64,000 nucleotides of DNA from Auanema rhodensis (taxonomy: Eukaryota > Animalia > Nematoda), in the NCBI GenBank assembly GCA_964057225.1, contig OZ059898.1:8866001-8930000 (forward strand), written 5' to 3'. Under the pieces are notes generated by a model that ran no database searches, was not told the DNA's origin, and saw only the letters and a list, made by a program, of their open reading frames with translations. The stretch's first letter is position 1, and each line of letters starts with the position of its first letter. Both the position numbers and the translations under genes were made by a program. This document shows, one piece after another, positions 1-8,200 of this stretch.

Positions 1-3000
1 CAGCTTGACCTGTGCCGTCCGAGTAACATTGAAATCGTAGCGAAAAAGAATTATTTTATGGAAGTTGATATGCCACGACACGTTTACATAAACGAAACTG
101 TTTCTGTGAAAATTTCAGTTTCAGCTTTAAAGCCACAACGCGAAACTAAGGTAATATTAGATTGTTCAATAAGTTAATTCCAGCTCAGTACGCATACAAA
201 TATACACATATAAAGATATCATAAACAAGTAACAAAAAATGTTTTGAAAACGTACATATGTTACTAAATGTTGAGACATATTTCGCTTAAAACTTACTAG
301 ACCATTTAATATTCTAAAGAATTGCTGAAAAATAATTTGTTTTCATTAGCTTTCCGTATGTATGGCTGATTTGTCAAGAAAAGTATGTGCTGATTTGGGA
401 GCATTTGGTAGATATGGGGAACCTGTATACTCTAGGTATATACTCAATTAAATAAAATTCATCTTAAATAAATGTTTAGAGTGATTGTATCTCCTAGCAA
501 AATGACTGATAGTAAAACTTTCACAATGAGATTCTTAGTTACTGGTCCTACAACAGTTCTTTTCCATTTGAGAGAGTATGTTTTCCTGGTTTGAGAGTTA
601 TTTTCATGAAGAACCTTTAAGAGAAACATCATTTCCTGGAAAGCATCATTGTGATATTGGTCAAATTTATGATTCAGTGAAACTCGATATAAATATCGCT
701 GTAAGTATAATAATAATATGTGAATAATATAAATAATATTATTTATAGAAAAGAGCGGAAACAGAGGAACATTATAAGAGATTAATATTGAATGCTGACA
801 AACCTTTGAGTAATGTCGTGCTACTCAATGATGACCCAGATGATGTCAAACGATTTAAAGACTTATTCCGAACTATGCCTCATGCATATCCAGGATTTTC
901 AACAAATAAAGAAATAATAGGTATATTAGTTAAATATTAATTATAAAAATAATAAATTTATAACTTCAAGAAGTATTTGAACATCGTTCATCAGATGACG
1001 CTAATGCTGTTGTTACCGAGATTCATACAAATATTTTGGATACTGATGCTGTTTATAGTTTCACAGTCGATATATCCAGTATAATTAATTACAGGAATAA
1101 CTCTCAGAAAAATTATATTTCATTTTAGAATTTCTACCAAACACTATCATCTCTGACTCACTCAATCGAGTTAAAAGAGGAGTTCTAGACTATGGTAACG
1201 CATTCTTAACGGATATTATCAGAAAATTGTCAACTGAGTTATATCAATTTAAAAGACTTCGGACTCAAGGAAGTATTGATATAAGACAAATACAGACATC
1301 AGAAAACAAAATTGGATCATGTATGATTACCCTAAACATTATAATATATATTTCCATATATTATAGTGATATCTGATATGCTTCGATTTTCTGATTGTGG
1401 TCTCAATCAAACTTCTTGTGGTTTCTCAGAATTTGGACGTCCAAAAGATGAATCAAGCCGTTCTCCAATGTATATATTACAGTTTTCTGATTTGATGAGC
1501 AATAATTATTTTACAGATTATCATCATTAGCTGCTTCTCTATTTTGTGAAGCTTCTGCTGATGAAAAATTGGCTTGTGGAACTATTAAATACATTCAGAA
1601 TTTTATCATAAATGGTCTAAAAACTAGCGATGTAGATATATCGGATATGATTGATATTGTAAATCATTAAGTTCAAATTAATTAAACAAATTTAAAATTA
1701 TTACAGGATAGTCCAGTAGATCGTCAATGGCTTTTAAATGCTTTGTTCTTACAAGTTTCCAAAGATTGTGCTGCTTTACAATGCATTGTATGTCCATAAT
1801 ATTCTTAAAGTTTGAATTATTTTTATTTTCAGAAAAACGATTTAGCATGGTCTAAGCTCTATTTCAATTTTTATGATCTGGATGAAACTTGGAGGTGTTG
1901 ATTCGACATATTTGTACTGAACTAATTATATGATACTTAGATTTGATGATCGAACATTGGCCGCCTTAGCCTTTATGGGAACAAATTCGACAGCTGAAAT
2001 TATGAGAATTAAGATGATGGAAAATATTAAAAGTAGTTTATATTGGCTTATGATAGAAAACAATTTTTTATTATTTTCAGAAGATATGCTTCCATTCTGG
2101 ACAGCTGGTACATCTAACGTTAAAGAAACCAAAAATAGGCTAAGCTCATTTGATGATATTTCTCGTGCAAGACGTCTTAAAGTATTATTGATTATAAATA
2201 ATGTAAAATTACATTATTTTATATTTTAGAGTGGTGATGTACTTGTTAATGCTTTGGGTATATTATCATTCGTTGTTCCTGGAGCAGAAGGACAAAACCT
2301 AGACTGGGATCCCTTAGCAAACTGGTTGTACGAACAGCAAGAAGAAGATGGAACATTTGTTGGAGCATTGGTAAACTGTTTTCTCATAATAGTATAACTA
2401 TAAATTTGATTTTTAGGAATCGTTCTTTGCCTCACGTGCTTTATATGAATATCGGTATCGAAAAGTTGAAAACATGGTTGATAATAATTTACAAGTTACT
2501 TTGACATGTACCAAGTGTCCTACATATGTTATCAATGTAACAGATACTGCATCGGAAATATATGTAAGAATTCTACAATGCTTTTGTACAAAATCATATT
2601 TATTAAACTTCAGCTTCCAACACATATTCGAAACTTAACATTAACCACAAAAGGTCATGGTAAAGTGAAAGCTGGTGTAAGAATACTTGCTACAAAAAGA
2701 CAAAGGTAGATAAAGAATTGGACAAATAAAACAAATTCATATTTTAATTTTCAGATCAAGAAGAGGTTTAACACAAGAAGATTACTATCCAGTTCGTTTT
2801 AGTGTCGAACAAACTTCTATTGCTGATGGAATATTGAAACAAACTGTTTGCCTCAGGTAAAATACATAAATCTATGAAACTCAGAAAAGATATTTTTCAA
2901 TGAATTTAGAATTGGATCTATTAACATTCGTGAAATTGAGATTACACATGGTATATTCACAGGATATTCTTCTAAAGTTAGCAATATATACATCTTATCC

Positions 3001-4077
3001 GTAAGTATTTTTATTTATTTCATATGTATAGTGAACTATAACATTTTATTATTTTTAAAGAATTCATCAGACACTTCTATCGTGGGATTACCTACTATTT
3101 CTTCTTATGCTGCACATTTTGTGCTTCAAGGTATACCAATTTATATAATAAGTATGTCTACTTTTTATTATCAGGGTTGAAATTTAAAACTCCTGTATGC
3201 TATGAAATTGGAATTACTGAACCTGGATATCATCACGAACCTATAAATCTAGCTCCAGTAGCTATTCAAGCCAGACATCCAGTTAATGGTATAGTTGGAA
3301 TGGTACTTATTGCCCATCCTGACCAAGTTCCACGATTCCGAAGAAACAGTTTTCCTATTAAAATTGAAAGAAAATTAAAACGAGATCCGAGAGGAATTGT
3401 TGATGAGTCTATCGATACAGTTTGTTTCAAGGGAGGTAAAACAAGGTTAATCGTTTTTGTTCTCTTATTAAGATATATTATAGGAGCATGTGCTTGTGCT
3501 GAAACTAGTTGCTCTGTTCAATGTGGAATGTGCGCCAGAGATTCGGAAGAAGAGTTACATAATCTGATCAGCAAGAATGAAAATAATTTTGGTGATTTTT
3601 TTTCTCTCTGGCAGAAAACCGCTATATTCTTTATTTTATAGCTATTCTCGTTACTGTTATGGGATCTAGTCAGGCAAATAGTGGAGGTACTGCTTACACT
3701 AGAATTTTAGCCGATGTTCGAAACAAAAAAGGATATAGAAAACAAGCTGTATCTGGTTTGATCTACTGTGATAATGAACATTTAACTAATGTTTTCAGAT
3801 CAGTTAACTATATGGCTGAGAGAATGTAGTAATCGATGTTTGCCTGAAGAGGATGTACAAAACTCACAAAGTTATTTCTTAATCGGAGACGTGGATGGAC
3901 TCTCTGTAGATGCCGATGGACGGTAAAAACATATATAGTAGCAAATAATAATCAAAATTGATATTTTCCAGGCAACATTATATCCTCAGAGATTCAGATC
4001 GATTCGAAGAAGCCACGAAGGAGTGTGGAGATCTCGCTAAGTTCATGCTTTTAACAAGTATTGGAAGCCATTTCTGA
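1..4077 (+). CDS. Thioester-protein (A2M/complement C3-like) family gene, 5'-truncated, multi-exon; MG6/7-CUB-TED-MG8-anchor-C345C(NTR) architecture; thioester motif absent
   Basis: Hand-spliced GT-AG exons keep one open frame to TGA at 4075-4077. Motifs are collinear with C3/A2M: LCRPSNIEIVAKKELFYEVDMPRHVYINETVSV (C3 [33 protein letters not shown]); NWLYEQQEEDGTFVGALESFFASRALYEY (TED end); LTLTTKGHGKVKAGV (CUB); IEITHGIFTGY (MG8); IDTVCFKGGACACAETSC (C3 LNKLCRDELCRCAEENC); SYFLIG..HYIL..DRFEE..EC.DL (C345C). Confidence 0.85.
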
Positions 4078-4338
4078 AAATTGCCAATTCGTTTGTATTG
4101 TATTTCTAATTGTAAAATTAATTAATTAAACTTTTTCATGTTTCCGAAACTTCAAGATATAGAATATTTAAATTATATGTATGTATATAAATCTTATAGC
4201 TTTCTTTAAGTAATCAATAAAATGTTAGCTATATAACTAAAAATAATGTTAGCTTAAGGAAACACTTATCTTAAAATTAAAACAATGATTTTCTAACAGA
4301 AAACAATTCTAATAAACTTTATATCGTTTTGCAAAATC

Positions 4339-4729: not shown

Positions 4730-5201
4730 TTTTTTTAAAAATTCTATTAAATTCTATATTATGTTAAATCATCAACACCTTTGAACTTTAAATTGCACAG
4801 TATAATAAACATATCTTGAAAAATATATATATATATATATATCTAAACAGCAAAGCATTTATTACAACTATATTAGATCACATCACTCGCATAGCCTATA
4901 TATATATATATAGTGGCTTCTCTTATCATAATTAGTATATAAATAATAGTAATAAAACAATTTAAGCTATGATGAATGAGACATTATAACAGAAAGGGTT
5001 GGGGTTTACAAAGCTTTCAATAGATGATAGAGGGTGAGCCGAGACATCAACCCTTACACGAAAAACATGGAGCAATGCTCCCGGAATGGGCAATGCCAGA
5101 AACCGAAAAAAAAACATATTATTTCTATCTGAGTTGGCTGCCGACACCAAATCAGAAGATAAAATATGTTAATTTAACGGCCATTGAGAATAAAATTAGA
5201 T

Positions 5202-8200
5202 TTAACTCTGGAAGAGTGCATGGACGAACTGTTCGTAGTCCAAACCACCCTGGATAGATCGTCCAGAAATAGCATCTGTGAAAGGCTTCATTCTCTTGAT
5301 ACAATACTCTGCCTGTTCCGTGGTGAGGTTCTGAAAAGGAGAAAAATGATGCTTTTATATAAAATAATTTAATAATAAAACATACGGCATAAAGCTCCTC
5401 GGCTGTGACGTATGGTCGGAACTCCTTTGAAAGAGCTCGGAAAGCCATCTCGATTTCTTCCGAAGATTGAATATTTTCGGTTTCCTTGCTGATCATGAAA
5501 GCCATATATTCTTGCAAGGTTACATAACCATCTCTGAAATTTTTTAAAGTTAGACGGACTAACCAAAATAATAATCTAATACCTGTTATGATCAACAATA
5601 TCAAGAATTCTTTGGAATTCAGGTTCGGGTTGTCCTTCATCAACCATAGGCAAATCATAACCGAGGGCTCGCAGACAGCTCTTGAACTGTTGATGATCAA
5701 GACGACCGGACTTCTCCTGAGCAAGTTGTTTGTTAAAATATATAGAAAAATCATCGAATACCTTATCGAAGTGTTTGAACATCATGGAGAATTCTCTGAG
5801 GGCTTCTTCGGTAACACCTGATTGGTTGCGGGCCTGGATCTGCTGCTCTAAGTTATGTTGCATTCTCATAGCTAACTGATCTAATTGATCCCAGGCTTGG
5901 GCTAATCCTACGGTGGAGTGTTCAGTGTACCTTAAGAAGAAACAATTATATAATAAAATTTTTTCTTAATAATACCTATTGTCAAGGATGAGATTTCTTT
6001 CAAGCATGGCTCCTTGTTCATCAATTCGCCTCAATTGGGATTTATTTTGCCTAATGTCTTGTGCGCGACGTTTCAAAACTTCTAATTGTTCTTCAAGGGA
6101 ACCGCTGGCTTCCATCATATCTTGGCGGGTAGTTGTGAGCCATTGATGGAAGTGGTTAGCGAGCTTAGCGAATTCTCTTCTTAGGCGATCGTTCTCTTCT
6201 TGTCGAGCATTTTCCTTTTGAAGTTCAACCTCACGTTCCTTGATGATTTTTTGCAAGTTACGCCAAGTGTCTTCGAGGGCATCCATGGTAAACCAGGTGT
6301 AAGGGTTTGGTCCAACGTTGAATGATTTGATCTGGCGGTCGAGAGCCTGGAGCTGTCTGAAGTCTTCTTCAGCAGAAGATAGGGATCGTTGGAATTCAGC
6401 GTGGGCTTCACGGAGAGCACGGATTTCTTCAATAGAATTGCATCTAACTGGGTCGGTAAGATCTTCCTCAGCATTCTCAAACCAAGAATTGAAGGTAGAT
6501 GCTTTCTTGGCAAATGCGAGGTACAGCTCCTGAAAATTATAATATGCATGTGTATTCAATGGTATAGCAAACCTCGATTTGTTTGTACTGTTCTTGCATT
6601 TTAAGTAATTTCTGCCTGCGTCCCTCAGAATTGGCAAGAAGATTCTGCCATCTAGTGATAACATTCGAATGGCGACCTTGAATGGCAGGAGCTTGGTGAT
6701 GTTTGCTATTAACAAGTTGATCCTTAAGTTCAGTAATTCTATAAAAAAAAAGTATGTGATAACATTCAGTTGGAATTTGAACCTTTGAATTCCTTCGTGT
6801 TCAAAAGCGTTGAGTCCAGCATCAAAAGCTTCTTGCTTAGTCAAAAGAATTTGAACAGAAGACAAGTCACGTCCGAAATCATCAGAGCGTACTTGTTGCT
6901 CTTTCTCAGCAATCCAACTTTCAACAACATCACACTTCCACATAAATTGGAGGTATGCAGAACTGTCACGAAGTTTCTTCAAACGATGAGTAGCCATAGT
7001 TTCGATGTCACGGAGACGATTAACCAGTTGTTCACATCTGGACTTGATGTGAGGAGCATGGTGATTGCCAGAATCAATGAGCTGAAAGCAAGTAAGAAAT
7101 ATTCAGAAAATAAAATATTTTAAATACCTTTTGGCCTTGCGTAATAAGATCAGCAACACGTTGTTGATGAAGCTGGAGATCAACTTCGAAAGTATCGTGT
7201 TTTTTCAGAAGTCCTTGAACAGCAGCCATATTGTCACCGAAATTGTCAGACCCGATAATTTGTTGTTTCTCGTTCATCCAAGCCTCCTCTTCTTCCACTT
7301 TTCCGAGGAATTCTTGGAAGTCTTCAGATTCATTGAGTTTCTGATGGCGATTTCCAGTAAGGTCACGAATTTGGCCCCAGCTTTTCTCCAACTCAGCCAT
7401 TCTTCTTTCGATCTCATCTTTTCCAATACCAGCAGCTTCAGCCGAGCGAATAAGCTCCTCTCCCTTTTGGCGAACCAAAGTAACTTGAGGTTCATGACTC
7501 GCCAATTCTGTATCAAGACGACGATGCTTACGACGAAGATTTTGGACTCCGGGAAGGTCGCGTCCGTAGTCATCAGAAGAAACCAAAAGTTTTTTCTCCT
7601 TAATCCAAGACTCTTCATCATCAATATCTCGGAAGAACTGGTGAACGTTGAGAGCTTTATGGAGCTTATCACGACGATCTTTTGCAGAATCCTTAACACG
7701 GTCGTAACGATCCATGATAGCCTTTCTTCGCTCAGCAATTTGAAGGCCTGCGAATTGGTCATTCTCTAGCAGAGAATCTGCTTGGTTGTTCATCTCAGCA
7801 ACACGATCCTGATGAGCCAAGATATCGGCTTCCAAGAGCTGATGCTTCTTCAATAGATTCTCGATTGAAGCAAGATCCTATAAGTATCAGATTAATTAAT
7901 GCTATTCAGCGTAAATTTCACCTTTCCGAAGTCTTCGGATTGAAGGAGAATTTCAACCTCTCCCAACCAGAACTCCAAATCCTTGACGGCAGCCATAAAG
8001 CTTTTCTGCTTATTTGCTTCCTTGAGGCTAGAAATAATAAACAATAAAGGAAATCAATTTCGTTAACCGATACCGATAACTTTTTTCGTTAGTAGTTTTC
8101 ACAAGAAGTTCCCATTGGTCGTTGAGAGCCTTCAGGCGAGCACTAACTGCTTCTTCGCCACCAGCACACTTAGCGCTATCGATAAGATTTTGTCCAGCTA

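Follow-up and report, generated by a model that had tools for sequence, protein, structure and literature searches.

The first 4,077 nucleotides of the DNA analysed here, a 64,000-nucleotide stretch of the nematode Auanema rhodensis (contig OZ059898.1, C6:8866001-8930000 of an AT-rich genome assembly of 181 Mb in 112 contigs; hereafter the window), hold the 3' part of a gene for a thioester-containing protein (TEP) whose C3-type architecture we could confirm. The gene is likely the orthologue of Caenorhabditis elegans F13D2.1, encoding a TEP, predicted to be secreted, in which MG1-MG8, CUB and TED-like domains are followed by a C3-type anchor and a C345C/NTR domain. A preliminary description, made from the letters of the window, had proposed an intact but highly divergent gene of the C3 lineage. 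Descent from that lineage is plausible, if unproven, and is the most economical reading of the sequences, because the anchor and the domain are contiguous and collinear with those of C3 and share its cysteine framework.

The evidence lies mainly in the C-terminal tail. Its motifs, as first quoted, are real and could be placed on exons: DESIDTVCFKGG closes exon 3175-3435 and ACACAETSC opens exon 3484-3591, with DTVCFKGG and ACACAETSC joined across the verified splice junction 3435/3484, while SYFLIGDVDG lies in exon 3799-3922 and HYILRDSDRFEEATKECGDL in the last exon. From anchor to stop the tail measures ~150 amino acids (aa). Read from these exons, the window gene has the anchor segment C-x-C-A-E-x-x-C between MG8 and C345C, and C.C.E..C is found in every nematode homologue covering the region, the fish C3 counterpart being CICAEENC. 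Past the anchor motif, the nematode proteins continue for 141-160 residues and fish C3 for 159. Folds and profiles were computed with homologue proteins, the window exons being searched individually and joined only for checks of frame and transcript length. A 16-sequence tail profile aligned with the fish C3 C terminus over 133 columns (hhalign probability 81%, E 1.2e-5), and in the whole PDB it matched only cobra venom factor (CVF) at E <0.1 (E 0.011), spanning anchor and C345C end to end. The alignment of the full-length profile with fish C3 spans 1342 columns and extends to position 1632 of 1654 (score 179.2).

We modelled the tail of the closest complete homologue (P0005, residues 1520-1676, 157 aa) with AlphaFold2 and obtained a mean predicted local distance difference test score (pLDDT) of 92.6 and a predicted TM score (pTM) of 0.88. 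All of Foldseek ranks 1-50 for this model were C3, C3b/c, C4, C5 or CVF (best E 1.7e-6, TM 0.68). An independent structural search against representative structures with VIA-align gave a Z score of 12.8 to C3c (model 2-157 on C3 1479-1637) and 8.4-11.6 to other C3, C4 and C5 chains, in comparison with 7.6 for the PCOLCE NTR domain, 6.6 for TIMP-3 and agrin NtA and values near 6 for generic OB folds. As the scores to C3, C4 and C5 exceed those to other NTR and OB folds, the modelled tail is specifically nearest to C345C, anchor included, and not merely to NTR domains at large. The claim of a C345C-type NTR fold behind a C3-type anchor, which could have failed for want of any such match or fold, thus stands on the Foldseek ranking, the Z score of 12.8, the hhalign alignment and the CVF profile match: the homologue tail folds like C345C.

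The gene itself is intact, spliced and transcribed. The gene region has a GC content of ~0.29-0.36, and a six-frame reading of window 1-4077 shows short coding blocks on the + strand. These are the last 24 exons of the gene, with a frame open to a TGA at 4075-4077. Transcript contigs from four public runs of one study cover window 1-4200 at 100% identity with no mismatches and carry 23 joints; 15 of these are listed, every one GT..AG, and fix 15 exons. The other eight junctions were set by contig coordinates and length arithmetic under the conditions that introns run from GT to AG and that the frame stays open; where two solutions satisfied these conditions, agreement with the homologues decided between them. 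GT..AG borders are found at all 23 introns (eight of them fixed with GT-AG as a requirement), of which 22 measure 43-60 nucleotides (nt) and one 199 nt. A suspected frameshift near 575-597 was rejected, the transcript showing a 46-nt intron at 576-621. The gene had been called intact and not decayed, and its frame, open across 24 exons, and the spliced transcripts of full identity agree with that. Its placement needed extending: positions 1-4077 do belong to a TEP gene on the + strand but encode only about the last 940 aa, the 3' two-thirds of the gene, and more exons lie upstream. The exons of the window and the parts that they encode are as follows.

Exons 1-8 (+ strand): 1-150, 350-435, 480-575, 622-700, 749-920, 971-1078, 1129-1320, 1367-1469.
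Exons 9-16 (+ strand): 1517-1658, 1707-1787, 1833-1894, 1941-2032, 2081-2181, 2230-2370, 2417-2563, 2614-2705.
Exons 17-24 (+ strand): 2755-2856, 2910-3000, 3061-3130, 3175-3435, 3484-3591, 3642-3755, 3799-3922, 3972-4077.
1-150 (+ strand): exon continuing from upstream (L003:9916-10000), A2M domain (MG6/MG7 region), Pfam PF00207 at E 3.4e-4, RNA joint 150/350.
350-1320 (+ strand): six exons of MG7 and the CUB-like region up to the TED-like start, with GT..AG transcript joints and tblastn matches to P0001, P0005, P0016 and P0030.
1367-1469 (+ strand): degenerate thioester exon reading FSDCGLNQTSCGFSEFGRP, with no Gln and a new Cys pair where canonical TEPs have P-x-GCGEQNM.
1517-3130 (+ strand): eleven exons that complete the TED-like domain and encode the second half of CUB and the first part of MG8, from RNA joints and record arithmetic.
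3175-3435 (+ strand): last part of MG8, two dibasic motifs of furin type and the first residues of the anchor; transcript identity over the piece 3173-3433 is 100%.
3414-3425 (+ strand): anchor start DTVC, within exon 3175-3435.
3484-3591 (+ strand): anchor motif CACAETSC (3489-3512), nematode-specific CxxC (SVQCGMC, to 3533) and first C345C helix.
3642-4074 (+ strand): body of the C345C/NTR-type domain in three exons (3642-3755, 3799-3922, 3972-4074), from transcript length and open frame.
4075-4200 (+ strand): stop codon (4075-4077) and 3' untranslated region, with transcript contigs continuing to 4193-4200.

Manual reading of splice sites helped to place ten more exons in the 1.85 kb upstream of the window (L003:8152-10000). 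A signal-peptide-like start, MG1, MG2 and the first part of MG3 are encoded at C6:8837650-8838868, ~27-28 kb before the window begins. The donor that closes these exons, GTACGT in phase 0, matches the phase-0 acceptor at L003:8150-8151, and the join loses no residues in comparison with full-length homologues. By homology and splice phase, one 25.3-kb intron would thus separate the MG1-MG2 exons from the rest, and the whole gene would comprise about 34 exons over about 32 kb, with a product of about 1,700 aa that is predicted to be secreted. With these exons and their matching donor, the idea of an N-terminally truncated TEP, which had been considered as 18 kb upstream were without MG1-2, was rejected.

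Among the window exons, the A2M match on exon 1 was the only Pfam match, and a genome-wide PF00207 search also matches at this locus. The orthologues carry Pfam A2M_BRD, A2M, MG2 and MG3 and a weak TED_complement, but full-length family members gave no match to A2M_recep, NTR or ANATO. Of the Pfam families expected from the preliminary description, A2M and, weakly and in homologues, TED_complement were therefore found, and A2M_recep and NTR/C345C were not. The MG array is recognised through PF00207, the domains of the orthologues and the PDB profile matches, which by sequence place the gene in the TEP/alpha-2-macroglobulin superfamily.

The MG8 and anchor exons, searched against 1.84 billion cluster representatives, matched 21 proteins, nearly all from nematodes, and word-index protein searches returned almost only nematode orthologues, together with one fish C3 and one rodent A2ML1. 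The nearest relative found, in Auanema sp. JU1783, is 60% identical over MG8 and the anchor. Homologues were also found in Strongylida (Trichostrongylus, Angiostrongylus, Dictyocaulus and Nippostrongylus), in Caenorhabditis bovis, C. tropicalis, C. angaria, C. auriculariae and C. elegans, and in Diploscapter, Mesorhabditis, Pristionchus, Steinernema, Anisakis and Gnathostoma. These sources indicate that the family spans clades III, IV and V of Rhabditida. The C. elegans orthologue, F13D2.1 (1637/1659 aa; UniProt K8ESF0/K8F7Z5; NP_001263969/70), is only ~30% identical to the exons of the window gene but has the same architecture, with the anchor CSCAETTC preceded by RRRR, a 144-aa tail and no GCGEQ. 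Its sole annotation is [quoted passage not shown], and our literature search found no article carrying the name F13D2.1 in its text. The novelty of the gene had been made to depend on there being no characterised nematode orthologue; an orthologue exists, yet it is uncharacterised. The claim is tempered by automated annotation, which already flags an NTR domain in one relative: a family fragment of Mesorhabditis belari is auto-named "NTR domain-containing protein" in UniProt, an independent detection of the domain. Two non-nematode proteins, P0008 (Euphydryas editha, 916 aa) and P0021 (ENA, 2482 aa), matched only the Cys-rich anchor stretch (query 97-131); the matches fall in 12 and 5 repeated stretches, respectively, and the proteins resemble cysteine-repeat proteins, not TEPs.

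The cysteines of the tail follow C3 in part. In the alignment with fish C3, the four anchor cysteines, a "core" cysteine (WLR-x-C versus PHC) and a K/E-x-C near the end coincide, and the nematode tails have in addition a V-x-C-x-x-C pair and an N-x-x-C. In the comparison with C3, C4 and C5, four cysteines of the tail are nematode-specific. An early cysteine lies a few residues off the K-A-C of C3, and a terminal cysteine aligns with its F-G-C. Both are kept in many nematode members, as in C3: they are found together in seven (Mesorhabditis spiculigera, Pristionchus, Anisakis, Gnathostoma, two Steinernema and one unnamed) and are both absent from at least nine others (Caenorhabditis, Diploscapter and one unnamed) and from the window gene, two or three sequences being discordant or odd. 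The coordinated loss of the two cysteines first noticed in the window gene is thus seen across the family. Their counterpart in C3 is, we assume, the disulfide linking the start and end of C345C, and the tendency of the two nematode cysteines to co-occur or co-vanish argues that they form the equivalent pair.

The overall plan agrees with that of C3, C4, C5 and CVF, with the same order of MG1-8, CUB and TED, an anchor motif followed by a C345C/NTR domain of ~150 aa, end-to-end collinearity with fish C3 and, for the tail, these proteins as the best structural matches. It differs in several of their hallmarks. The GCGEQ thioester is found in none of ~23 family members; the window reads FSDCGLNQTSCGFSEFG where fish C3 has PMGCGEQNM, and the family consensus at the site is FSDC(x4-7)CG[FY]xE[YF], a Cys-x(4-7)-Cys-Gly loop having replaced GCGEQ. 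With GCGEQ missing from every member, the sequences exclude covalent tagging (opsonisation) by the family. Thioester loss is tolerated among accepted members of the TEP family, C5 being an example. An anaphylatoxin domain and a beta-alpha RXXR site, which the preliminary description had suggested seeking upstream, were looked for there: ANATO went undetected, and an alignment of 13 sequences shows no conserved basic motif, RXXR included, from the Cys hairpin to IRxxF.EVWLF. The linker from MG6a to IRxxF.EVWLF opens with a module of four conserved cysteines, which a C-x(6-8)-C pair may follow, and ends in 20-70 variable residues. Its four conserved and two variable cysteines form a pattern unlike the six-cysteine four-helix bundle of ANATO, and its model (pLDDT 65.9) is confident only for a two-helix hairpin; a vestigial ANA may still be hidden in the modelled linker.

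Before the anchor, the window gene has the dibasic motifs RFRR (3333-3344) and KLKR (3372-3383), and in 21 of 23 homologues the segment from "HPD", where MG8 ends, to the anchor contains one or more [KR]x[KR]R, a position that sets the family apart from C3, C4 and C5. Cleavage there is predicted to free a fragment of anchor and C345C of ~165 residues. The C4 gamma chain is longer, with 281-290 residues in PDB chains, and because the predicted fragment is shorter, the dibasic site probably does not correspond in position to the alpha-gamma site of C4. The genome was also searched for the factor B-type partner that a complement-like system would suggest. No gene combining CCP, VWA and serine protease domains was found, Sushi and VWA matches lying at least ~300 kb apart, in a search that scored best candidates only and is weak evidence of absence. 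Clusters of Sushi/CCP exons were seen at C6:11584738-11591189 (+ strand), C4:9532343-9534695 (- strand), C3:9137935-9142061 (+ strand) and C3:15985932-15991730 (- strand; C3 and C4 here denote contigs); these are candidate factor-H-like (CFH-1-type) multi-CCP proteins, and none is near a VWA match.

Several results weigh against the reading as a C3-type protein of C3 descent. With the tail removed, the family profile scores fish C3 and rodent A2ML1 almost alike (138.2 vs 140.7), and the PDB profile search places CD109, C3, A2ML1, A2M and C5 within 10 bits. The best PDB match of the TED profile is A2M (E 6.6e-5), with C4, CD109 and C3d appearing only above E 0.01, and the MG8/CUB sub-profile has no PDB match; as to lineage, neither sub-profile is informative. 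Taken alone, the sequence matches of the tail are marginal (E 0.011; probability 81%), Pfam NTR (PF01759) is found neither at E <=0.1 on full-length homologues nor at E 1 on the window exons, and the genome-wide Pfam NTR search gives no match at the window locus. The fold is that of the homologue P0005, which is 34-54% identical in the tail region, and not of the spliced product of the window. ANATO (PF01821) has no match on the orthologues at E <=0.1 nor at the locus in the genome search, and the linker model has no Foldseek match at E <=0.001, the hit to desArg-C5a at E 9.6 being noise. Transcript contigs end ~110 nt inside the first downstream exon, short of the junction of the 25.3-kb intron. 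Cleavage, disulfide tethering, secretion and a binding partner are deduced from the anatomy of the protein and from the behaviour of C5 and C345C.

Much of this would suit a TEP of the CD109, insect TEP or A2M lineage that gained its NTR domain independently, for instance by exon shuffling from netrin or from another NTR protein of nematodes, making the architecture convergent. The body is equidistant from C3 and A2ML1, and the full profile matches CD109, C3, A2M and C5 in the PDB at E 1e-17 to 1e-20 with CD109 nominally on top; the TED profile prefers A2M, the ANATO, thioester and beta-alpha site are absent, and the nearest language-model neighbour is a cluster named "CD109 antigen-like". However, 7 of the 10 nearest atlas clusters are C3/C4/C5, and further features speak against an independent gain: the anchor C-x-C-A-E-x-x-C stands before the NTR fold as in C3/C4/C5, kept residue for residue, the structural alignment runs through anchor and domain (C3 1479-1637) at Z 12.8 when non-complement NTRs reach 7.6 at most, and the early and terminal cysteines occupy the positions of the pair in fish C3. 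We therefore consider convergence unlikely.

Alternatively, the anchor and C345C tail could go back to the ancestor of a group of TEPs broader than C3/C4/C5, and nematodes would then retain an old architecture outside the C3 clade. The lack of C3-specific signal in the body (138.2 for fish C3 vs 140.7 for A2ML1) fits this, and C3-like genes date back to Cnidaria and have repeatedly lost domains (PMC8960428). On the other side, in the tep-1-like paralogue of the same genome, which has GCGEQ, the ~16 kb that follow the last matched exon contain no anchor motif. To our knowledge, no TEP outside the C3/C4/C5-like proteins has been reported with an anchor and C345C tail, which we also count against an ancestral tail, and such an origin appears very improbable. 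A decaying or mis-assembled remnant, be it a pseudogene or an artefact joining a TEP to the NTR exons of a neighbour, might be suspected from the extreme divergence, from MG8 and NTR falling below Pfam thresholds and from several truncated or chimeric database models of relatives, such as that of Auanema, but it is effectively refuted by a frame uninterrupted over 24 exons, by spliced transcripts of 100% identity running from TED through C345C into the 3' untranslated region in four runs, by invariant cysteines and by the same architecture in >20 species.

Building on descent from the C3 lineage, we tentatively propose, as a possibility that we would not call probable, that rhabditids including C. 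elegans have kept that lineage in the form of a cryptic C3/C5-like family, that of F13D2.1, without thioester and ANATO. A C345C domain released by furin and tethered by disulfides would bring in a partner, forming an extracellular module that resembles complement but works non-covalently and that might act with the factor-H-like CFH-1 and with TEP-1, recently tied to glia and cilia biology, and not in classical immunity. Apart from this wider scenario, and by analogy with C5, which lacks a thioester, the protein probably serves as a large conformational scaffold working non-covalently; the gastropod "type I" C3-like proteins, without ANATO and thioester, offer an alternative model. The conserved dibasic sites that lie between MG8 and the anchor would be cleaved by convertases of the furin type, leaving a C345C chain of ~17 kDa held to the body by the anchor disulfides, and the tethered C345C would dock a putative partner. 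The variable linker before IRxxF.EVWLF may be a bait-like or activation site, and its cleavage a possible trigger.

The gastropod proteins are the closest precedent in the literature: alpha-beta site, ANATO domain and thioester have all disappeared from them (PMC8960428), and the F13D2.1 family shows the same set of losses. They belong to another phylum, with losses that are probably independent, and the likeness is one of description only. For nematodes, surveys of complement report that C3-like genes were lost from the phylum (PMC8960428) and that Caenorhabditis encodes none of C2-C5 (PMC1896004), in agreement with the premise that nematodes are described as lacking C3, and C. elegans work treats TEP-1 as the only C3 relative in the worm (bioRxiv 10.1101/2025.10.23.684198). 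The F13D2.1 family qualifies the statements of C3-like loss in nematodes. A second TEP, conserved, expressed and with a C3-specific tail, revises the TEP-1-only picture in the most tractable genetic model, and F13D2.1 could reveal the role of a TEP that has C345C but neither a thioester nor a convertase, and any interaction of it with CFH-1. Two more reservations apply to the claim: the body carries no C3-specific signal, and three other C3 hallmarks (thioester, ANATO and RXXR) are absent or undetected.

C. elegans TEP-1 (ZK337.1) and CD109 belong to the same superfamily; TEP-1 has GCGEQ, a GPI (glycosylphosphatidylinositol)-anchored isoform and no netrin/C345C domain (bioRxiv 10.1101/2025.10.23.684198). 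The second TEP locus of the genome (contig C3:~9279000-9287100, - strand; loci L009, L011 and L014-L016) is a probable orthologue of tep-1. Its thioester exon, with PFGCGEQNM, is intact, and the ~16 kb searched past the last matched exon contain no C3-type anchor motif. It also has three alternative FPETW exons in tandem (RRNFPETWVW, RTEFPETWIW and RSFFPETWVW), an arrangement that suggests mutually exclusive splicing of the bait region.

Within the predicted 25.3-kb intron of the F13D2.1 orthologue lies a distinct gene on the + strand (LELAPPYHNLPNTAYFRNAHIVPPPI; L003:7127-7970 = C6:8863127-8863970). The Auanema sp. JU1783 model CAI4233102 fuses the counterpart of this nested gene (aa 2-111) to the TEP body, without MG1-MG2, and is probably chimeric; the neighbour order of TEP and nested gene is common to A. 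rhodensis and Auanema sp. JU1783. Farther along the window, at 5152-7000 on the - strand, open reading frames resemble, by eye only, the C-terminal end of alpha-spectrin, with spectrin repeats followed by an EF-hand-like region.

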